Both the position numbers and the translations under genes were made by a program. The notes under the pieces were generated by a model. The model worked only from the letters and a program-made list of their open reading frames with translations, searched no databases and was not told where the DNA came from. From positions 1-64,000 of the forward strand of contig JAHLWZ010000423.1 of the NCBI GenBank assembly GCA_020536535.1: DNA of 64,000 nt, written 5' to 3'. The stretch is from Pelomyxa schiedti. Taxonomy: Eukaryota > Protista > Evosea. Below are positions 7,001-58,665 of this stretch, piece by piece (position 1 is the first letter of the stretch; each line of letters starts with the position of its first letter).

Positions 7001-10000
7001 ATGTCGTCTAGCAGTAGCACAGTGTCCACATCCGGCGAAAGAGGAGCGCTGGGCCGCAGCGGGTCGCAGTCGCCCTCCCCCGGAATGAGCAAGCTCATGA
7101 AGCGTACTCTCAGTTTCATGAAAATGCCCCCTCACGCACAGAAAAACGCGGTTGCGCCCCCGACGTTGCCCGAGAGCGCCGTTGCAGATATGCCAGATTC
7201 CGACTCTAACGACGAGGACGAAACTTTCCTCAACGCCATGCAAATGGTTGTAAACAATAATATAAAACCTAAGTTTGTATTTGCTTTGTTTTTTTAGTAC
7301 ATTGTTAATTAATATCTGAAAAAAATGGTGGTTTGTACTTATGACTGTATAGGAAGCTCCCTGTGTGGAACAAGTTGCTTGCTTAATGCTTCTCCTTAAA
7401 TCCCGCATGATGCTGCGTCGAATGATTGCCGCCAAGCAGTTCACAGAGCGACTTTCTAAGGGAGACCTCAATGCATTTGAAGTAACAAAATTGGTGCAAG
7501 GCCAGGACGCCTCAGACGATAGTGACTTCATTGTGAGAATATCCGAGCTTAAGAAACAACTTATGGCCGAAATCCGTAAAGCAAGAGATAAAGAGAGAGA
7601 GGTTGCAGTATTGGATAAAACGATATCTCTGGTGGTTTTGGTATGCCATTCGTTCCTCTCTCCTTTTATAATGTGTGCAGAACGTAGTTTCAGTTGCAGC
7701 AGAAAAGGCCCGGCACACCAAAGCTCCTCCCGCTTCAGCTGGTGCGGTTAACGTAAACGTGCTATCAGCTACGAAATTGGAGGTTTTACAAAAATTAAAG
7801 AAAGCAAACAAATAACAATTGTTTTCAGAAATACAGCCATCTCTTCCACTTGTTGCAGTCTGAACCTGTTTATCTCGCCAGACTTATGGACGCAGTGGAA
7901 GCCAAGGTGATTGGACTTTACAATGAAAAGATAACTAAAATATATTTAGGTTGATGAACAATCAATGAAAGAATTACTTGATACCATTATTATAACAATG
8001 TATGGTGACGCTTTTGCTCCACGTGAAGAGTTTTTGCTTCTGAGTTTCTTTGAACATGCCATTGAACGCATCATGTCTCAAGCAACCAAAGTGATGTCCT
8101 TTGTGCAGAACCCCTTCCTCCCTCCCATGGTTATTACATACAATAAGTACTTGCACATTCTTTTCCCCCACATCCTCAATTTGCAATAGGCGCAAGCAAG
8201 GTGTTGAGTATCTCCAAGCAACACTGGGGCCAGTGATGAAACAATTCTTAGCTGAAAAACTTACACTTGACCCAAATGCCAGAACAGTAGGCCCTCTGTT
8301 GTGTAACCAAGACTTAATTTCTCTAGATTCACGATCGCTATGTGAAGGAAACGGAAGTTAACGAAGGCAGAAAAGTAGAGAAGAGAAACTTAACCGACGA
8401 TGAGTGCGCTGCGTTACCAGAAATTAAGGAAGAAGTATCGAGACGTGTGTAAATATTTTAAATATTCAACCCACATTTTCTCTAGGTCTTGAGCACCTAA
8501 AGCGTCACTCTCTTCTGTTCTTTGAGGCAATATGTTCAACTGTCAATAAATTACCGTACGGGCTTCGATGGATTTGCAAGAGAATTCACGACGCGGCAAT
8601 GGTTTGCTTGTCTTTTTTAATTCACCCTTTAATGTAAGTTAAGGATGCCTTCCCTGATGCCTCGGAGGATGACATTAACCGTCTCACAGTCCACTTTGTG
8701 TACTTCCGATTCATCAACTTGGGTATTGTAACACCAGATCCCTTCAAAATTGTCGACATTCAAGTTCCTCCCGAGTCCCTATTCAGTTTACTGCAGGTCG
8801 GTTATGTCCCCTGTTTTCCCGTTTTCATTTTTTTCGCAGGTTTCGAAGGTCATTTATAATATGTTCAACCTTTCCTTGTTCCATGAGTCTGCTGAAAGGT
8901 GGTTGGCACCACTGAACCCATGGATTATGTCTCATGCAGACTCTGTCCGGAAGTATCTACATGCAGTTTTGCAAGTGGATCCGCCTGAGGAATATCTGCA
9001 AGTTGGATCGTACATGGAGTTGATGCACCTCGTTAAGCCTGTAATCCTTGTAGAAGCCAAGGAACTTGTCAACGTTCACACTTTACTGCAAGTAAGGTGG
9101 CGGAATTTTATCCCACTTCTAATACGACTTCAAATAGGACAACCTTACAGAGGTGGCACTTAAAGCTAACGATCCTCTTCTCGAGTTGATGAAAGACCTC
9201 GGACCAGCAGAAACTTACCCGGACGACGGGAAAGCAATTCAACTTACACTAGTGAATAAATTCCCGCCCATGGATGGTGTGTTGCCAAAAGTATTCGAAT
9301 TTCTGACCTTTGTTTAGATCCACAATCCGAAATCAACCAGCTTTATTCCAAGACGAAAACAATGGTTGTACAAGCACTTCGACAGAACCCCTCACAACCA
9401 GTGGCTGGGATGTCTCTTGAAGCTATTCTGGAGGTACACAGTAGAATATTTTCTATTTCCTCCTAACACGCAGAAGGCAGGCCAAGCTGCAGCTGCCAAG
9501 GGTTCCTCCTATGATAAACTTGTTGATGAAATCTTAGAGAACCTCGAAAAACTCGAAAGAGAACACAAAGTCTCCTCGGTATTTTGATTATCACGAAGGT
9601 TTTATCTCAAACGTGCAAAAAGGAGGATGGGTATGCAGAGTTTCTGAAGGCTGTGACTTTGGAAATCACAAACCGTGAACGTGTACGGGAACAACAAAAG
9701 AAAGAAGTCAATCGTTTGGAAGCTGCCATCAATCAAGTTGGACGACAACTTAAGGTCATGACCGAACAAATTGCACAGTATAAAATGTTCCTGGACTCCT
9801 GTCTCAAAAGTCACATGCATGTAATGATGGGAGGCGCCACGAAGACTGGTAAATTGGGACCATTCAAGGTTATCTTCTTCCTATATTATAGAGCCTAATT
9901 GCTAACAAATTACAGTTTTCGTACCTTGAAATGGTAAAGAGAGGTGTTATCATCGAATCAGAAGTGCCCAAATACCTGTAAACTCTCCAAACCACAGATT

Positions 10001-10246
10001 TTTCTTTTTTTTTTTTAACACTTTCACAGGCAGAAGAAAACGAGGTTACAAATTTCCTCGGAGGAAGCTGGTGTATTTGATGTTGAAGTAATGCTTCCTC
10101 GGCCGTTGCCATCGGAAAAAATGCAACTGCAACTAGCCGATCTTTTGGACAAGCGAGACCGCAACGTAGAACGAGATGTCCAGAACAATGTAACACTTGA
10201 TGTCAACCTCACACTACACTGGCTCAACAGCCTGTTCAAGAGATAG
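7001..10246 (+). CDS. IQGAP-related RasGAP-domain protein (Dictyostelium DGAP1/GAPA type), multi-exon
   Basis: Spliced exons give LLQSEPVYLARL, MYGDAFAPREEFLLL, LPYGLRWICK, YFRFINLGIVTPD, a RasGAP_C coiled coil and LGPFKFSY. All junctions are GT-AG. Confidence 0.9.
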
Positions 10247-10360
10247 ATGGATGGCCAGACAACAACCAGTTGCCATCACGGGAAAAAAAATAACCATTCC
10301 AGCTGTTAATAAGGGGAAAAAAAACAAGCTTTGAGTTGTTTTGAAAGTACAAAAGTACAT

Positions 10361-12904
10361 TCATGGATTTTTGTGCCTTGTTGTCCACTCTGTAATGGCA
10401 CTCTTGATGGTGTTACAAGGAATGAGTTGAAGGGATTTAAGAGGTAAATTTGTCTGAGGGGATGTATGGCGGCCTGTGGACATCCAAGAAACAATGGCCT
10501 CACGTTCATATAAATAGCCATCAGAGGCAAGTACGGGGTCCTTCATTACTTCCTGCGTTATCGGGCAGATGAATTCATATGGAAGACAGTCACCATCACC
10601 ATCATCACTGGGGCAGCTGGAATTGCTGTTTTTGTTCGCCATTCTGGATAGCTTGTTGTCAAGGAAGTCAATGTAATGCGGGGCATAAGACTTGTTTTCG
10701 GGAAGTGAAATGTCCTTGCTGAGGTTTACATAGCCTACTGGATTGGGTGCGATAGACAGAGAGGGATCAAATTGGCGCCGAGGGGCGGAAGGTTGTTTGG
10801 GGGTGGAAGTTGTTGGTGTTGATGTAGGTGTTGATACTGGTGCTGATCCTGATGGAGTACCGCCACAATCACTATCAGTATCTTCATATTCTTCTTGCTG
10901 TTCTTTGTACTGTGTATTCAGAACAGATATTAGTTTTCGGATGGCGGTTCTGTTCGCGGGTGGTATTCCTAACTTGAGGAGGTCTGATACAGAGAGATGG
11001 AGAAATGCCCAGCCGGGAAGTACCCCTCCACAAGTGGCTTTGTTTGCGATGTCATTGCTTAGGCCTTGACTAATAAGCCATTTCTCTACTTGCTTTGGGT
11101 GCCAGCAATCAATGGACATCATGTTGGGAACTAACACTACTGGTATGTCTCCAGTACGAGAGATATGTTCCCTCACGTGAATGAGTTTTTTTAGGTTCAG
11201 TAGAGCTCTTACTTCTTTGGCTGCTGGAGTTGCTCCTTGTGGAGATGGCTCTGTCTGTGTAGGGGGGGTTGTAGAATTTGATACAGCTGTAAGTTTGGGG
11301 GGCCTCTTTGCTACAACGGAGGGTAGACCTATTCCCCATCCATTTGTTACACTGTCATCCAGTTCGGCACCATCAACTTTCAGTTCGGACACTGCTGTTA
11401 GAAAGTTTGAAGAGGTATTTGCATCAATCCCCAATCGGAGAAGGAATTCAACCACTTCTTCATGTGATAAATTCTTTAGGGAGTGTGTTTCTTTGAGATG
11501 GGTATCTAGTTGCACAGCAAGTTGGTCAGACTTGGTAAACATCTTTATTGCATTGTCTTCCCCTGCTGTGACAGCATCCAGACAGGCTTTGGTCTCTTTG
11601 ATATCACTTTCGGCTCTCAGTAAATCTTTTGAAATGGATACTGTGTCATTTTGAAGACCAGCCAGTTGGCTTTCTAGAGCCTTTAAGTGGCTTCTTACAG
11701 CGAAAACTTCTTTCTCAACCTTTTCTTGAGAAGAAACGGAGGAATTTTGCCTCTTATGAAGAGATTCTTCAAGTTCTTTGGCGTTTGACAAACTTTCCGT
11801 GCAATGCTTCTTTGCTTCCCCAAAGGCATTCGCCATTACTTTCCATGCTGCCGCCCTTTGATGTGATGAGCGTCCTTGCAGATAATTTTCGATGTTAGTT
11901 TGCAGTAGTTGGATAACTTGACTGTTCCTCTGAGGTGGGTTGGTATCTGGTAACAGGTTACCAGATTTTAGTTGTGACTCAATTTGATTATGTAGACAGG
12001 TTCCCCATTCCTCGATGGTCATAATCCCAGTTGTTTGTGTTGGTGATGATGATGTCGTTGTTGGTGTTGAAGCTGACAATAGTGCCGATGCCGATGATAC
12101 TGATGCCAATTTTTCTGCCGAGAAGGCGGAGGAGGACACTGAAGGGCTCGAGGGAGACTTGGGCTGTCGTTTCTGGGTTTCCTCCATTATTGCAGCTCTT
12201 ATTCTTGGATCCCATGCAACATCTTGAGGTAGTTTCCCATCAATTGCACGCTACGCACAATGAAGAGTGAGGTGTAAAAAGCACTAACTGATTTTAGAAT
12301 GGACAGCACACTTGGACGTCAAGAGGGGAACCCCTATTAAGAAGTTCAACAACACAATCGTAACCAGCCCACACTCGTGCTGCACAATGAAGAGGAATCT
12401 ACATTTCTAAGGCGTGGCGAGTTCAACAGAAGACTTACCTCCTATACATGTTAGAGATGAAAAGAGAAGAGGCAAACCTGCTTGAAAATCACTAGTCCAG
12501 GTACAAAAAACAGGAATAAATAGATAGAAAGAGAAGGAAAAAATCTGTACCAACTGCAGAATTTCAGCTACAATTTCAAATAGTGGGAGAAAGGTACCAT
12601 CCTACAGTCCAGTGAGCACGTCAAGAAAGGAAGGAGAACGGGGAAAAAAAAGATCACAACAAGTTTTCAATCACTTTAAGGAATTATTCAGCTACAAACA
12701 TATGTGTTCGCAGGTGCAGGAGTCGACAGTAGTTCAGGGTGCATATTAATTGCACGAGTTAGGCATGGCAAATGAGCCCTCAGTGCCGCTACATGTGCAT
12801 ACATACTCCCAAACTGTTTGCGTTCAATAAACACATTTCGAGATTGTTCTGAACATTATTATCACCTTCTCACAGGGATCAGCAAATGAAGTACAAACAG
12901 ACAT
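10361..12904 (-). CDS. Ankyrin repeat - coiled coil - 2xSAM - U-box E3 ubiquitin ligase
   Basis: C-terminal U-box (PYEFICPITQEVMKDPVLASDGYLYEREAI) and SAM-like segments (WHPKQVEKWL..LSVSDLLKLGI). Upstream exons 12904-12866, 12813-12700, 12398-12312 and 12250 onward splice in frame and encode ankyrin repeats (CAHVAALRAHLPCL; IPLHCAAR..CVVELLNRG..DGKLPQDVA). Confidence 0.88.
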
Positions 12905-12962
12905 CGTTTCGGGTTTTTTTTTTTATTTACTGATTTCTGTGAATGCGTAGAGAGACGTTTTA

Positions 12963-15154
12963 TCAGTGGCTCTCTGCGGAGGTTGTTGTGCATGTCGAGG
13001 CTGTTGTGGATGTGGGTGTAGTTGTTGTGGAGGAGCCTACGTCTTGTGCACCTACTACTTGTTCAAGGAGGTGAGAGAACTCGGGCTCGATGTTGGTGGC
13101 TGTTGGTGGTGCTGTGGGTGTGGTTGAAGGTGGTGCCTGGGTCAGGTTCACTTTAAGGGTCAGGTTCTTCTTGTTCAACCAGGAGTATCTGTTCCCAACC
13201 GGTGAGTTGTTAGTGTGGGAGAGAATTGTGGTGGGGAGTGTACGAGTTGTCCCAGAACAGTATGATGGAACCTGGAGCGGTTGCTGTATAATGGCCCTTT
13301 ATACCATTTGTTAGAAAGTGATGATGAGCGTGTTGAATGTACCGAAATTGTTTCTGTGTTGGATCTAACAAGTCCCAAGGGGAACACAGAAAGAGTTTTC
13401 TGATGGAAATCAGTTGAGTTGCTATGGTTTTTTACAGTTGTTACACACAGGTGAGTCTGCAGCTGATGCAGCGGGTATTTCAAAAGTGGCACTGAACTTG
13501 ATATCTCTGTCTGTTGTAAACTCCCAAGCTAAGGAGTCTCCAGCCTGCATTGTTACTCTGAAATCATGGTTGGTGCTGACGAGAATGTTCATAGGTTTTC
13601 CACTGTAGACTGTAAGTTTGAAGCTTGTGCTACGAACGGACAAACTTGTTGCAATTGAGAGCATCCAGGGCTTGTTTTGTCAAGAAGAATGGAGAATTTT
13701 GCAAAACTGTCAGAAGAAGGTCTAAGAACGGCTTGTAGGCAGCAAGAAGGTGTTGTAGTGCCTCCACTGCCTTTGGTAGACTTGCAACAGAAATTTGTAT
13801 CCTGAAAACGATACATTAGATGAATGTCTAAAACAAAGTTGAGCGCACATGGCTTCAACAGCTTGTGGAGGAAGAGTTTTGGCGCGTGTTACTACAGTGA
13901 CACAACAGTAAATCAAAGTGAGAAGAACTTTTATCCTTGGTGAAATTAGAAGGAATGGGCATGATGAATGGGGCACAACCTTCTGATGTAGCGAGTTAGC
14001 CAGTATTGGTAAACGCCATAGGTTACGCGGTACTCTTCCATTGGACTGAAGATCCATTACCTTATTGACATGGACATTGAATACACCATACCCCTGCTCG
14101 TCATTCACTGTCTTGATGAAGTCGAACAGACATTGGGGGACACCGCCAATATAGCAAACAAGTGCCTTAAAAACTCCGGACATATTACCCAGATTGACCA
14201 GGGATTGTCGCCTTCATATAGCCTTTTTAGGGAAAAAAAAACTTGTCTAGGAAGTCAACCTAGCCATTTGGTGCTGCCACATCAAGTCATATTTTGCTTG
14301 AATGGAGGGATTTGTTTTTGTCTACTTAAATTTTAGATAAGATACTAGGAAAAAGAACTTACTAATTCCTCCAATTCGTGAGTACAACGATCTTCGGATC
14401 TTTGTCGTGTATAGGCAACGATTGAGGCTCTCCAGTCTTGAGGCATGAAGGTCTTGACTAAACAGAGTGTTAAGTGGAGGCCAGCATTCAAACACTTACT
14501 AAGGGATTCTACGGCTACAACGCAGTCCTTTTGGTATTTCTCGATAGCTGCAAGGGTAGTTTGTGCTGTGGAGGCCACTTGAGAACTTTGGCCCCATTGA
14601 ACAGCTGGATCAAAAGGAACACCAGCTTGTGCAGATCCCGTTTTGAGAATGCCTTCCATTGCTCCCACATTGCGTGAGTTGTACATCTCCATTATTTCTG
14701 TCAGGAAACAATGAACAGGGGAAAGACATGTGTAGGAAATGGATAGATGTACAAACCCTCGAGCATGCATCGGCACTCAAACAGCTGCAAGGAGAAAAAA
14801 AATTAAAAAAAAAAAGTTAGGCGTCTTGAATACATTTGTATCCATTTTATGAGGTGGGTCCATGGCACAAAGCTTTTCGACTCCAGCCAAAACAGCAGTA
14901 GTTCCCGTATTGGCACCATCATGAGTAACCAATGCAGCCTTTTTTTTTTTTAATTTTTTTGTAAAAATAAACCCAAAGAAGAAACCTTAAGTGTCGCAAT
15001 GGTTTCGTCGAGAATTAGGGAGTGCTCCTCGTCGGCAGCATTCGGGAGTCCCTTGACGGGGTATTCTGCCCAACATGAGTTTATTAACAGTAACACAGTA
15101 CGTACTCGTGTAGTAGGCTCGAAGGTATTCTCGGGTTATGGGAGCAAGCTGCAT
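12963..15154 (-). CDS. GOLD-domain protein resembling plant At5g01010, multi-exon
   Basis: Spliced product contains LAPITREYLRAYY, PPHKMD, TFMPQDWR, GVFKALVCYIGGVPQCLFDFIKTVND, GPMEEYR, NSPFF and GOLD motifs LAWEF..DIKF..WDNSYSW. Family assigned from recalled motifs. Confidence 0.8.
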
Positions 15155-52125: not shown

Positions 52126-55100
52126 ATGGCACACATGAACCTACAGCCAGGGTCGACAATAGGACCATATACCGTGGTGCGGTATTTGGGCGGTGGAGCA
52201 TTTGGCACCGTGTACGAAGTACTCAACCCCCAAGACCCAGACAACGGCCCGCACAGGGCCCTCAAGATCGTTGATACGACCCGGAAATCCGCGCAAGAAA
52301 ATAAGGTTTTCTTTTTCTCGCCTCAAGTCACAGGTGCGCTAACTGCTCAACTTGACTTTTAGTACCTCCTACAAGAGGCCTACTTGCAAGAATCCTTCAA
52401 CCACGAGTATATCATTCGATTGTACAGACAGACAGTGTGTCTCTTCTTTTATTTCTCCAAAATTAAGATTGAAAACCTAAAACATTGAAAGTGGATTGGA
52501 AGAACAGTGCTACTTGAACTAGAGCTCGGAGGTGAATCACTCAAGGATATTCTTAAACGACAACCACTGTCTGAGTCACAAATAAAACTATGGGCAAATC
52601 ACATTGGTGTGGCTCCTCTCCACTCCTTTTTTTTCCCCTCTAAGGGTTTCATTTTCCAGCGGTTGCTATGGGTGAACTTGCAAGAAGACATATTGCCCAC
52701 AGAGACCTTAAGCCAGACAATGTAGTTTTATATTTTTGTTTCCAGTTGCTAAAATTTGTGGTATACCACAGATTTTAATTGTTGGTCGTAGTGATGACCC
52801 AACCGCTGTAGCCAAATGTATGTGTTACTCCCCATTCCAACGCTTTTTCTAACTTGTGTCCAGTATGTGATTTCGTAAGTTTCCTACTTTGTCTTTACAT
52901 AGGAAGGTTTTGACTTTAGCTTCCAAAAGGGTTTTGCACGTGAATATGAGGGACTGATGGAGTCTCAGCTAGGTATGTTAAAGAAAAAAATTTTTTTTTT
53001 TTTTTTTTCACATTCACTCTATAAGGCACTCCACTGTATATGGCACCTGAGATTGTGAAACATCAACCATATGGACCAATTTCCGACCTCTGGAGTTTGG
53101 GCCTCATCTTTGCTGAGGTACCATTGTTACTTTGCTCTTCCTCTAACTTCAATTAAGATGGCTGGCATTCAAGTTATAACTGCCAAGACTCCTGTTCAGC
53201 TCCTGCTTTTTGCCCAGGACCCACAGGATATCACTTTTAACGCTCCGTCGTTCTCCTATGCTTTCAACACACTAATACAAGGCCTTCTAAAAAAGTATCT
53301 CCCCCAGTTTTTACCTTCATAACAGTCTGCTCCAGAGACCAAAATTCACGCATGACTCATGAGCAGCTCTTAGCACATCCTTTTATCCAGCTGCCAAAAG
53401 TTATCATACTTTCTCCGCCAGCCAACCACGAGGCTCTCCTTGGGGGCAGATTGCCTCACGTAATCCAGCATAATGTGAACCCAATTGTTCTTGGCACAAT
53501 GCCTACTCTGGGAAGAATAGCCACTGTTGACTTCCCTCTATGGTTTTTTTTTCTAACTTGTGTCAGATTCTTCTTTCAGATACACCTGCATTACACCATT
53601 CAATAATAGTGGGGAGAAGCAAACTTTCCCCAGACACTCCCACCACGCAAGTTTTAACGGAGGTGTGATATAAGTTTTCATAAGTGCTGCTTACAGTTCT
53701 TATTCCAGATCCTCCATGATGGTCTCCTTATTGTGGATGACAATTTTTGCGATTTACTCCTGAGTTCTGCAGAGGATGTTATTCCTCCTCCAAGAGCGGT
53801 ATTACATCCACTCTTCAATTAACAATCCCTTTATTTTATTGAGCCACAAAAGCACACTGCAGAAGAGTATATCAGCTACCTCCAGCAATTCGATGCGTTA
53901 CACAATCAACAATTGCTGGTTAATTACGTTCTCGATGTACTTACAAATCTTGTTGGAGCATCAAGGTTTACTGACAAAGAGACGGTTTAGAAGGGCTTAC
54001 TCTTTTAGAAATACAAATGTGACTGATCTTGTCACTCAGTGGCAAAGTACAAGAAGAGGCGCGGAAGATCAAATTCTGCATCTGAAGGAAGTACTGGAAA
54101 TGGTGAGTTTTCAATTTGTTTAAAATCTTCCTCCCTGACCACCTAAAAGTGCCAGAAGACTATACTTCCCTCAGACATATCTGCAATTCCAAACCAAACA
54201 CTCGCTCCATATGCAGCTTCTATTAAAATCCCAGATGCAGCATCGTTCTACCAAGCTGGTACGTAAGTTGGCTTATCTCTTTCTTTTTGGTAACGTTCTA
54301 CGAAAGACAATTGGTTCAATAAACGTGCTCATCTTTCTAACTGGTATGAGAACACCTTTGGACTAGTCTTACAACATTTAGTCTTGTGAGACAAACAGCA
54401 GATTATGCAGCCATGTATCAAAAATACTCACATCTCTCGGAAGCACAAGCGCGACAAACAGCAGACTACACAGATATCACAGAAGCACAAGCTGCATGTC
54501 CAAGTCCTACATTTAAATTCATTCAATCACCGTTAACAGGGGATGCCCAACTCAGCGCAATCGGTGATGAAATCATAAAAGCGTACAATAATACACTGTC
54601 GTGCTATAGGGACTGTGTAGGCCTCAAAAATTTCAACTTCCACTAATTTTTTTCCAGCTAACCTTCTGGGAGACTTTTTCTTCCGTTTGGCAAGTCGTAA
54701 ACTCCCCAGACATTTTCTTGGCTGCCATCAGTCAAGGTTTTTCCCCTTTCAGATTTTACATTAGAATCCTCACTTCTTTCAAGCCACTGCTGAGCATGAA
54801 GAGTTTGCCAATAGCATTAAGGAGCAAGTTCGAAGTGTTGAATCTGTGATGAATGCTGTGAAAGGGTTCCCCTTTTCCCCTTCTCCCTTTTGCCTCACCT
54901 CGCTCCAGGTTTTATCCCAAAAAACTTGCACAAGATATACTTGACAACAGAGTAGCTTCAGAGAATGTTTTGCAGGAGTAATTATCCACTTCTTAATCTA
55001 TGTGAATTATCCAAACTCTGTCCAGGGAGCTTTCAGCATCCGGAATCAGCCTGTCATTCAAGCCCCTCCCTAGTGTTGAAGTTCTTACACAGACACTAGG

Positions 55101-55603: not shown

Positions 55604-57082
55604 TTAAGCCCCTTTTTTGGAGGCTGATAATGTGGCAAGCCTCACACCAGAGTTCACGTCATAAAGTTCAATGAGCAAACTGCTTACAGTGGGTTTGATA
55701 CGATATTGTTGTGTGTGTATCCGTGGTGCAAAAAGGCTGTTGTTGTGGGTGCTGCAGACTTCCTCGATTTCGATGTTCGGGTCCAGTGAGAAGCAGGGCG
55801 AGGCCAAGTCATCATGGGAAGAAGCGCGGAACACTGTGACCTTGTTGTACACATATAAATCGTGAGCACTTTGGGCTACCATGAAGTGCTGGTCTGTGAT
55901 TTTACGTACACCACCGGGGAGTCCTCGGAATTGGCCGGTCGTGGAGTTTTGAAGGCCGCAAGTGCTTCCTCTGTGTTCCTGAATAGTGACGATAGCCGGT
56001 TCTGTGAATAGTACCGCGGTTGGCCGTTGGGCGATGTGCACATCTTTCTCGATGAATAGTGACTTGGTTTCGCAGGTCTTCTCGATGTCGATGAACAGGA
56101 CGTGATCATTAAGCGGGTATTCGTGGAGGTACAGCATCAAAATGTTTCCGTTCTGCCGAGAGAATGCAGCGGTGTTGAAACTCTGGGTGTAAACGGACGG
56201 CGGCTCTTTCGTGATCTTAGCCATAACAGTCACGTGACTCTCCAGAACAGGTTCCCCATGGTCTACTTTCCATGCCTCAATTTTCCGATAACCAACTAGC
56301 ACAATCCACATGGAATTGCAGTGCCCGGAAAAGTGCTCTTTCAAGTCACATGACATCAGAGTCTTCTTCCCAGTACCCACATCATCCTCGTCGTCGTTAC
56401 CAATCCAAGGTGTAAACACATAGAACTTGTTCTGGACCACATTCCCAGCAGGCCACAGCACATCCAACAGGAACCTGCCCTCGCCCAAAGACCCCAGGAG
56501 AGTCCCGGGCGACCAGCGAGGCTGGCAGATGATTCTCACTACGCCCAGCGTGCACGACATCGACACAAACACGCGGTTACTGACTGTCACCTGGTATTCC
56601 TCCTCCTCCTCCTCGTCGTAATCGTCTTCGTCCTCGCTCCATTCCTTATCCTTGACCTTGTCCGCGCCCTTGTCTTTGCCCTCGTGTCCTTCCTCGTCCT
56701 CGTCCTCGTCGTTGTGCTCGCGGTCGTAGTACCTGTCGATGAATAACCCCTCTGCGTCGAAGGACAGGCCCTCCCATCGGCACTCCAGCGTGACCCACAG
56801 CCGCCCAAACTCGGTCATCAGGGAGGGGCCCAGGAGACCAACCGGCGAAGGCGAGGCGCGGGGCCCCTCGGTCGCCGCCGTAGCCGGCGCGGTCGAGGGG
56901 GGCGCGTACACGGCCGAGGCGAGGGCGAGGAACTGGGACTTGGCTGAGAGGACGACGGAGGGGCGCAGGGTGACCGAGCTGCAGTTCGCGGTCATTGCGT
57001 GGAGACGCTGTGCCGTGAACGGTTGGGCAAAAAGGTGCCAACGAGGTCGTTTCGGGGCTGGCGGCTGCGGCACAGCGGCCAT
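55604..57082 (-). CDS. Hypothetical intronless protein with an N-terminal 'KSQFLAL' module and an acidic tract
   Basis: 492-aa ORF with a beta-rich C-terminus. Confidence 0.75.
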   Translation of the reverse strand: MAAVPQPPAPKRPRWHLFAQPFTAQRLHAMTANCSSVTLRPSVVLSAKSQFLALASAVYAPPSTAPATAATEGPRASPSPVGLLGPSLMTEFGRLWVTLECRWEGLSFDAEGLFIDRYYDREHNDEDEDEEGHEGKDKGADKVKDKEWSEDEDDYDEEEEEEYQVTVSNRVFVSMSCTLGVVRIICQPRWSPGTLLGSLGEGRFLLDVLWPAGNVVQNKFYVFTPWIGNDDEDDVGTGKKTLMSCDLKEHFSGHCNSMWIVLVGYRKIEAWKVDHGEPVLESHVTVMAKITKEPPSVYTQSFNTAAFSRQNGNILMLYLHEYPLNDHVLFIDIEKTCETKSLFIEKDVHIAQRPTAVLFTEPAIVTIQEHRGSTCGLQNSTTGQFRGLPGGVRKITDQHFMVAQSAHDLYVYNKVTVFRASSHDDLASPCFSLDPNIEIEEVCSTHNNSLFAPRIHTQQYRIKPTVSSLLIELYDVNSGVRLATLSASKKGA

Positions 57083-57194
57083 GCTTTGGCTTTATTTGTT
57101 GTTGTGTGAAACGACACACTGGAAGATCCAAGTTGGAATAAAAAGAGTTTTCGCCAACGAATTAATTGGTGCAGCTACCCGGTCTTGTGGTTGA

Positions 57195-58665
57195 CTAAAA
57201 GGCATCACCACGGTCACACAAGAACAAGGACACATTGTCTAGTTCACCTTTCTGTGCCAACAGTTGGAAAAAATCCCGTATCTAGTGACGGGGTAAGCTC
57301 GAGTCATACTACTAGGAGTACAAACCTCGGCAGTGGTGTAACGTAGGCTGAAATGATGTAGTATGAACCTCGTCTGTTTGTGATTGCTAACATAGTGTCG
57401 CAACTGACTCCAATAGCAGTGTCCATACTTATCTGCGTTTTCCTCAAGGGAGTCGTCGTCAGTAATGAAAGTGCATTCACACATCTTGTGAAAAGGGTAA
57501 GTTTTGGTCGAGTCTTTCTGTCATACAATTGTTGGATAATCGAAGATGCGAGGATTCTTGTCGAAGATAGATGGGTGTGTATCACCAAGAAAGGCAAAAA
57601 TCGGTGTGGTCACAGTGCCAGATACCTCTACTCCATTTTTGCGTAGTTTCGCGATCTCCACACCCGATAAAATTTGGTACTCTGCTTTCAGCTTTTGTGC
57701 CTTTCTCATAATACCATATCCGATGCAGGGAACAGTATGTATGCACTCGAACACTTCAAACGAGTATGCATTGCCTCCACACGTATCCATATCTCTGACA
57801 TCTCCTGGGGATAGCCCGATTATCTCGTATGGCGAAGCAATTCGCTCGTCAAATTCGCAGCAATTGGACATTTCGATTTCCTAAATTTCTGTGGTTACTT
57901 CCTCCAACAGTTGCAATACAGGAAACAAACCGCTTTCAAGAAGGCATGAATAAGCGGAACAGCTGGTTTCGGAACATAAACGAGAACACCCGAACGACCC
58001 TTTGCTCTGTGTTGTGCTCCCCTCTTGCACTCATAAGCCACATTCCGAGCATGATCCGCATGCGTGTGAGTGATAAACAGCTCGTGGGGCTGCCTTCCCG
58101 AACTGGTTCCACACTCGAAAGCCGCATCCAGCGAGGGCATGAACAAGAAAACAGAGTCGGCAGCCCGCGAGTACCCCTCTCCCTTCACACCCGGCCACAG
58201 TTCTATCTCCCTCCACTCTCGGAACGGCGAACCCTGTGCTCTCACGCCCGCAATCCCGAACGCCATTGGCTGTTGCTGTTGCTGCTGTTGATGATGCCTC
58301 GGCCTGCTGCTCCCTGTGGAATTCCCGTTCCCGTTCCCGTTCCCATTCCCATCCGCTGTTGGTGCCGCTGAGGTGGCAGCGACCTTGACTTTAGGTTTTT
58401 TTGTTGGACTTGTGGTGTTGGCAGCTGCCTTTGGCGTGGTGGTGTTTGTGGTCGGAGGTTCTGTTGGCGATGTGGGTTTCGTGTTTGTTGTTGTTGTTTC
58501 TGCGGATGTGGTGGGGCTGTTGTCGTTGGGTGTCGGGGTTTCGGTAGTATCTGGGCTGGCTGGCTTGTGGTCTGGAGGTGGCTCCTGACTATTATGGGAT
58601 GTCGCCTCTGGGTTGCTGGGTGGTGTTTGTGAACTGGGATTGTTGTTGGTGTGGGCTTCAGTCAT
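57195..58665 (-). CDS. Short-form tRNase Z-like metallo-beta-lactamase
   Basis: EGYS, FITHTHADH, HTVPCIGY, KLKAEY exosite, AFLGDT, ECTF and LHHFSLRY motifs, with a disordered N-terminal extension. Confidence 0.85.

Follow-up and report, generated by a model that had tools for sequence, protein, structure and literature searches.

The locus analysed here raises the question of how a 301-nt gap inside the gene Pelo_5183 of Pelomyxa schiedti is spliced: as one ordinary intron, or as a chain of short introns separated by coding exons of a few nucleotides. Pelo_5183 lies on the minus strand of contig C423, in a stretch of 64,000 nt that was analysed as a whole and is called the window below; the gene corresponds to the deposited hypothetical protein Pelo_5183, with 100% identity over its last exon. 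The gap (12699-12399, minus strand) begins with GT, ends with AG, and separates an exon that ends in PAPANTY at 12700 from an exon that starts with IPLHCAAR at 12398. Sequence comparison indicates that the gap probably holds real coding microexons, namely GATG, a 14-nt unit and GAG, arranged as a short-intron chain and not as one intron. This reading is supported because the units are conserved in a paralog, because their donors rank at the top of the gap, and because the same architecture is found at other loci of the genome.

For the single-cell genome of the anaerobic archamoeba P. schiedti, gene models were produced by Augustus, PASA and EVM with transcript data, and the annotation has 7.4 introns per gene (PMC8887013). 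Pelo_5183 encodes an ankyrin-like N-terminus, then a coiled coil, and then a C-terminal U-box. The U-box domain (PF04564) was detected with an E value of 2.8e-19 and 69.5 bits against a cut-off of 21.4, and the identification of the gene as an E3 ligase, made earlier from the sequence alone, is borne out by this match. The same sequence-only reading placed an ankyrin repeat on each side of the gap, of which only the downstream one is recognisable: the downstream exon gives a weak Pfam Ank match (E 0.0015, 19 bits against a cut-off of 21.1), and the upstream exon has no Pfam match in either Pelo_5183 or its paralog and is ankyrin-like by eye only. Two single-cell RNA runs contain 58-61% of the words sampled from 10300-13000, so the ligase gene is probably transcribed.

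All four units of the gap are flanked by AG upstream and GT downstream on the minus strand, and the layout first read from the letters (coordinates, four units, and spacers of 98, 44, 59, 36 and 40 nt) matches the sequence exactly. The first chain intron (12602-12699, 98 nt, GTTTGT...TGTAG) has a donor that ranks second of the 21 GTs in the gap. It is followed by candidate microexon 1, GATG (12598-12601, 4 nt, in the context tag-GATG-gtacct), which runs from phase 0 to phase 1, encodes Asp and contributes one base, the first, to a Val codon. The second intron (12554-12597, 44 nt) leads to the uncertain microexon 2, TTG (12551-12553, 3 nt, cag-TTG-gtacag, phase 1 to 1); when TTG is skipped, this intron becomes 12492-12597 (106 nt). 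The third intron (12492-12550, 59 nt) precedes candidate microexon 3, TGATTTTCAAGCAG (12478-12491, 14 nt, tag-TGATTTTCAAGCAG-gtttgc, phase 1 to 0), which finishes the Val codon and continues with I F K Q. The fourth intron (12442-12477) is the shortest of the chain at 36 nt and has a CTAAC 9 nt before its AG. Candidate microexon 4 is GAG (12439-12441, 3 nt, Glu, tag-GAG-gtaagt, phase 0 to 0), and the fifth intron (12399-12438, 40 nt) completes the gap. Local translation of the four joined units gave, as had been read before, 24 nt encoding DVVIFKQE in frame and with no stop. The segmentation that we favour is thus one of four or five short introns of 36-106 nt, parted by three or four microexons, a layout that the sequence makes likely.

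Homology-anchored introns of the window measure 46-61 nt. The chain introns, at 36-98 nt, fall in the working intron size of the genome, with 36 nt at or just under its lower edge. No direct or tandem repeats were found within the gap, and no allelic second copy of the locus was found. A motif of the form ACTGGAC/CTGGACT adjoins the acceptors of units 1 and 3 on their upstream side (12602-12620 and 12492-12504, minus strand), and a similar motif, ACTGGCA, precedes the GAG unit of the paralog (paralog locus sequence 1481-1498). This motif might be a branch-region variant or the trace of a cassette duplication.

The sole paralog in the 52-Mb genome is Pelo_942 on contig C75, which is 29% identical across the whole protein and alike in architecture through to the ...KNP end. 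Its exons follow the same order: a first exon MSSVCPWGNACDK, an intron, an FGS... exon, a gap of 504 nt, and a TPLHCAAR exon. The last of these is a clear ankyrin repeat (Ank 31.9 bits, E 1.4e-7, profile positions 4-30). The DNA of the two gaps is not alignable, the best local score being 22 against a null mean of 21. Seven AG-x-GT units are nonetheless present in the paralog gap, AAT, CTT, GGCAAC, GGT, TGGG, TTTTCATGAAG and GAG, with lengths of 3, 3, 6, 3, 4, 11 and 3 nt. Together they amount to 33 nt and read NLGNGWVFMKE in frame, and the introns between and around them measure 54, 80, 49, 48, 75, 44, 80 and 41 nt.

The last three paralog units match units of Pelo_5183 in order, phase and content. 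TGGG corresponds to GATG: each is a 4-nt NNNG unit whose end, in phase 1, falls within a Val codon. The counterpart of the 14-nt unit in phase and position is TTTTCATGAAG (11 nt, V F M K), and both encode V-(I)-F-x-K/Q and end in phase 0. The unit tag-GAG-gt is identical in the two genes, and lies 41 nt before the xPLHCAAR exon in the paralog and 40 nt before it in Pelo_5183. When the paralog gap was shuffled, GAG appeared as the last unit in 1 of 3000 shuffles and the similarity of the tail peptide was reached in 13 of 3000, so that the shuffle p for the shared units is about 3e-4 to 4e-3. The conservation of GAG and of the F-x-K/Q unit, with their AG and GT flanks and their phase, in a paralog of 29% identity with an unalignable gap stands against the view that the gap is a single intron.

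The donors of the units were scored with a matrix trained on 76 AG-NNN-GT units of five other loci. The top three of the 20 internal GTs are those that follow GAG (12438), the 14-nt unit (12477) and GATG (12597), a ranking with a chance of about 1 in 1140, and the GTAAGT after GAG is the best-scoring donor in the gap. With the same matrix, six of the seven unit donors in the paralog occupy the top six places among 31 internal GTs. In both gaps the unit donors are the top-scoring GTs, which again speaks against a single intron.

The reading frame further restricts the combinations of units. With introns of 30-110 nt, just four tilings of the gap are in frame, with units of [4,3,14,3], [4,3,14], [4,14,3] and [4,14] nt. 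GATG and the 14-nt unit are common to all four, so that use of the conserved 14-nt unit makes GATG mandatory. Skipping the 4-nt or the 14-nt unit singly breaks the frame. As the sequence-only reading had noted, the frame survives without TTG, without GAG, or with the whole chain skipped.

Spaced AG-x-GT units were also sought across the genome, with the pattern YAG-NNN-GTAWGT, then 25-55 nt, then YAG-N(x)-GT. Clusters on the same contig appear in the list for x = 3 only, and these led to arrays of units at ankyrin genes. Five loci were examined, at C310:39340-39960, C368:450-1200, C601:48750-50500, C163:66620-67660 and, on the minus strand, C851 at about 56540-57800. Each carries 9-22 AG-NNN-GT units, mostly with GTATGT donors and spaced 45-130 nt apart. 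The arrays sit between an ankyrin exon ending in ...GADVNFQ or ...NPNLQ and an exon beginning with TPLH or DTALH. Within them, 76 AG-x-GT pairs have x = 3, and no other length reaches more than 12, apart from x = 7, where the inner GT of GTATGT produces an artefactual count. On the opposite, antisense strand of the arrays there is about one AG-x-GT per length, and the background of the 64-kb window is flat at about 55 per length. The array units form varied codons, and no stop occurs among about 66 of them. The introns of the arrays have a median length of 70 nt, with 44-100 nt as the 10-90% range and about 38 nt for the smallest credible one.

In two of the arrays the last unit is GGAGAC (Gly-Asp), which provides the conserved ankyrin Gly. 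Since the flanking exons alone would yield a repeat of 28 residues at these two loci and not the 33 of the ankyrin period (Pfam PF00023), at least some units there must, as judged from the predicted protein, be translated. That other ankyrin loci need some units for full repeat length is a further point against a single intron in Pelo_5183.

A positive control for very short exons is provided by a protein-kinase gene of the same window (52660-53117, plus strand), which contains an 11-nt exon TATGTGATTTC at 52864-52874. This exon encodes (L)CDF of the KLCDFG motif and is flanked by an HRDLKPDN exon (Pkinase profile 114-128) and a ...TPLYMAPE... exon (profile 160-189). The neighbouring introns measure 50, 46, 55 and 53 nt. 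The frame of the kinase and its KLCDFG motif are restored solely when the 11-nt exon is spliced in; on this reading of the kinase gene, there is no doubt that the P. schiedti spliceosome can process an 11-nt exon flanked by introns of about 50 nt.

Several observations weigh against a microexon chain in Pelo_5183. The sequence-only reading had named equally frequent in-frame tiling of shuffled introns as a refutation, and the bare tiling fails by this measure: of 400 shuffles of the gap that preserved dinucleotides, 65% can be tiled in frame and free of stops when introns may be 30-110 nt and units 1-15 nt long. Because shuffled gaps give such a tiling so often, in-frame tiling alone is no evidence for a chain, and it was dropped as such. 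The acceptor matrix cannot tell real AGs from decoys, and the final acceptor, which is certain, scores lowest. The 36-nt intron is slightly below the smallest credible array intron. The form with all units skipped spaces the repeats near-canonically by eye (about 35 against 33 residues), and the insert is thus dispensable for the protein. The comparison of units depends on one paralog. The genome-wide scan for the strong-donor two-unit pattern gave no bulk excess at x = 3 (74, against 78 at x = 4 and 80 at x = 2), and only local clusters stand out. Protein searches were made in a 5.8-billion-protein collection, with the 608-residue open reading frame and with residues 1-190 of Pelo_5183, and exhaustively in cluster representatives, with residues 1-110. 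They returned deposited genome models and generic ankyrin proteins and no transcript-derived protein; a further collection search gave only the deposited model of the paralog. Unit 2, TTG, is not matched by any paralog unit, and the GT that follows it at 12550 is a weak donor, ranking 14 of the 21 GTs in the gap. TTG is doubtful for these two reasons: the odds that it is a real microexon are about even, and it may be skipped or unreal. Overall, the description of the gap as an extreme microexon array remains the best-supported one and is supported for GATG, the 14-nt unit and GAG by the paralog, the donors and the arrays at the same ankyrin position elsewhere in the genome; for TTG it is uncertain.

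The strongest alternative is that the gap is one ordinary 301-nt intron, that all units are skipped, and that the AG-x-GT pairs are chance occurrences or intronic signals such as decoys or U1-binding sites. The gap is pyrimidine-rich and intron-like, and the ease with which shuffles tile and the near-canonical repeat spacing of the skipped form, seen by eye in both paralogs, are as this alternative would have them. Set against these points are the homology-anchored introns of the window, which measure 46-61 nt, along with the conserved units, the donor ranks and the repeat lengths of the arrays described above, and we consider a single intron unlikely.

A second alternative is partial recursion, in which TAGGAG-GT and AAGCAG-GT act as tandem acceptors of the NAGNAG type. 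In both TAGGAG and AAGCAG the distal AG is directly followed by GT, and only these two could act recursively: with the distal AG as acceptor, a 5' splice site would be restored and GAG would be removed without trace. Zero-length AG-GT junctions of this kind lie at 12440/12438 and 12479/12477 and have equivalents in the paralog, the tilings [4,14] and [4,3,14] without GAG are also in frame, and the strongest donor of the gap is the GTAAGT after GAG. Against partial recursion, the first AG past the branch-like CTAAC motif is the proximal one, in TAG, and the Glu before xPLH is kept in both paralogs. The 3-nt units of the arrays elsewhere in the genome do not end in AG, and 3-nt exons are their usual state, which recursion leaves unexplained. 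We regard the recursive route as quite improbable, and give a similarly small chance to the mRNA that it would yield, which contains only GATG, an optional TTG and the 14-nt unit.

The remaining alternative is the deposited annotation. The deposited model of Pelo_5183 has a single 51-nt exon, DGTFLPLFEIVAEILQL (12551-12601, minus strand), between introns of 98 and 152 nt. This exon is the sum of unit 1, the 44-nt spacer and unit 2, and the model leaves out units 3 and 4. The model begins at an internal Met (MYAHV...), without the conserved exon 1 and the first three codons of exon 2. Deposited Pelo_942 begins at an ATG inside a chain intron (MMSNFPPSSLDWQIG..., C75:6400-6920) and also splits the TPLHCAAR exon at an internal GT, and its annotation at the chain locus appears clearly wrong. 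To our knowledge, ab initio predictors are unable to emit exons of 3-4 nt, which we count against the deposited model. This model is a public record of the Augustus, PASA and EVM pipeline with transcript data (PMC8887013) and combines the acceptor of unit 1 with the donor of unit 2 in frame, but it is hardly credible, since it is incompatible with the conserved 14-nt and GAG units (51 + 17 nt breaks the frame), relies on the weak donor at 12550, meets an in-frame stop when the paralog is read through in the same way from its 4-nt to its 11-nt unit, and comes from the pipeline that garbled the N-terminus of the paralog and missed exon 1 here.

The deposited models of both paralogs are thus wrong or doubtful exactly at the chains, from which it follows that the ankyrin proteins of P. 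schiedti are probably mis-annotated systematically. Standard gene annotation cannot model a layout with exons of 3-14 nt.

A microexon chain at this locus would be spliced by intron definition, with its own GT, branch region and AG in each short intron, so that the length of the exons would not be limiting. An exon of 3-4 nt would leave no room for a U1 complex beside the complex on the upstream 3' splice site. Neighbouring introns would then have to be removed one after another, because two complexes could not share such an exon. The sequence-only reading had offered, next to the array, a stepwise way to remove a long intron; this predicts the same mRNA as the microexon chain and is not a separate molecular outcome, since the chain, too, would be cleared from the gap step by step. 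If spliced in, the units would add D-V-(V)-I-F-K-Q-E, 7 or 8 residues, just before the xPLH of the ankyrin repeat, and these residues would fill positions 1-3 of the repeat and lengthen the hairpin or loop. Inclusion of the units in mRNA, the order of splicing and the effect on protein binding are what we infer from this arrangement.

Frame arithmetic would permit combinatorial skipping only for TTG, for GAG, or for the chain as a whole. A broader proposal is that the microexon chains and arrays at ankyrin hairpins form a splicing-based diversity generator, whose frame-neutral units, TTG and GAG in Pelo_5183 and up to about 20 single codons elsewhere, are included or skipped combinatorially; from the sequences at hand this is doubtful. 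If it were true, one gene could give many variants of an ankyrin binding loop and, in a ligase, variants of the substrate-recognition surface.

The ordinary exons hold about 97% of the coding sequence of Pelo_5183, and all lie on the minus strand. Exon 1 (12866-12904, 39 nt) starts with the ATG at 12904 and reads MSVCTSFADPCEK, with MSSVCPWGNACDK as its equivalent in the paralog. It is followed by intron 1 (12814-12865, 52 nt, GTGATA...ACAG) and exon 2 (12700-12813, 114 nt), which reads FGSMYAHVAALRAH...STPAPANTY and ends at the gap. Exon 3 (12312-12398, 87 nt) reads IPLHCAARVWAGYDCVVELLNRGSPLDVQ and carries the ankyrin repeat from profile position 5. An intron of 61 nt (12251-12311) separates it from the last exon (10361-12250, 1.9 kb), which encodes the coiled coil and the U-box and has its stop codon at 10361-10363. 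An A-rich stretch lies at 9989-10026, about 340 nt downstream of this stop codon.

If RNA confirms the chain, few known runs of consecutive 3-4-nt exons would be as tight. The chain would then also exemplify an architecture found genome-wide in an archamoeba, in which as many as about 20 single-codon exons stand at an ankyrin hairpin. Such a system would bear on the smallest exon size that is possible under intron-definition splicing, on the removal of neighbouring introns that are separated by an exon too small for two spliceosomal complexes, and on how microexon arrays arise. A literature search turned up nothing on microexons, single or in chains, for Pelomyxa or other Amoebozoa, and no publication on single-codon ankyrin arrays.

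The nearest relatives of the chain are the arrays at the five ankyrin loci on contigs C310, C368, C601, C851 and C163. Like them, it runs from an ankyrin-type exon end to an xPLH exon, consists of AG-x-GT units, has introns of the same sizes, and would encode a hydrophobic, strand-like insert. The arrays are almost purely 3-nt, with 9-22 units and strong GTATGT donors, whereas the chain has few and unequal units, weaker donors and phase-1 junctions, and lies in a U-box ligase.

Ultra-short coding exons are known from other eukaryotes, the neural microexons of animals being a further example. Microexons down to 1 nt have been described, as has their mis-annotation (PMC8831610, PMC12940212). The putative units of Pelo_5183 resemble the microexons of plants, fungi and animals (1-15 nt) in their length of a few coding nucleotides, in the ordinary AG and GT that flank them, in their conservation between homologues, and in being of a kind that annotation routinely misses or models wrongly. 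Those microexons are mostly single or in small clusters, whereas Pelo_5183 would have three or four in succession, the paralog seven, and the other P. schiedti loci 9-22. The chain also differs in its 3- and 4-nt exons, in its introns of 36-106 nt, in its occurrence in an archamoeba, and in its placement at one defined position of an ankyrin repeat.

The micro-exon genes (MEGs) of schistosomes have exons of 3-81 bp and introns of up to 5 kb, and their small exons make up most of a secreted protein (PMC10526429). The chain shares with them the tandem arrangement of very small exons and the possibility that skipping of frame-neutral ones could vary the protein. It differs in that the insert would lie in one loop of an intracellular U-box ligase, in its tiny introns (36-98 nt), in the 4- and 14-nt units, which are not multiples of three, and in the large share of the coding sequence that is held by ordinary exons.

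Finally, the chain may be compared with recursive splicing. In recursive splicing, as in Drosophila Ubx and in long vertebrate introns, a 5' splice site is regenerated, no exon is left behind, and the introns span tens of kb. Common to recursive splicing and the chain is that the region between two exons would be removed stepwise through internal AG...GT sites. Unlike recursive introns, the gap is 301 nt long (504 nt in the paralog) and its units start with GA, TT, TG and GA; because none begins with GT, the units would stay in the mRNA.

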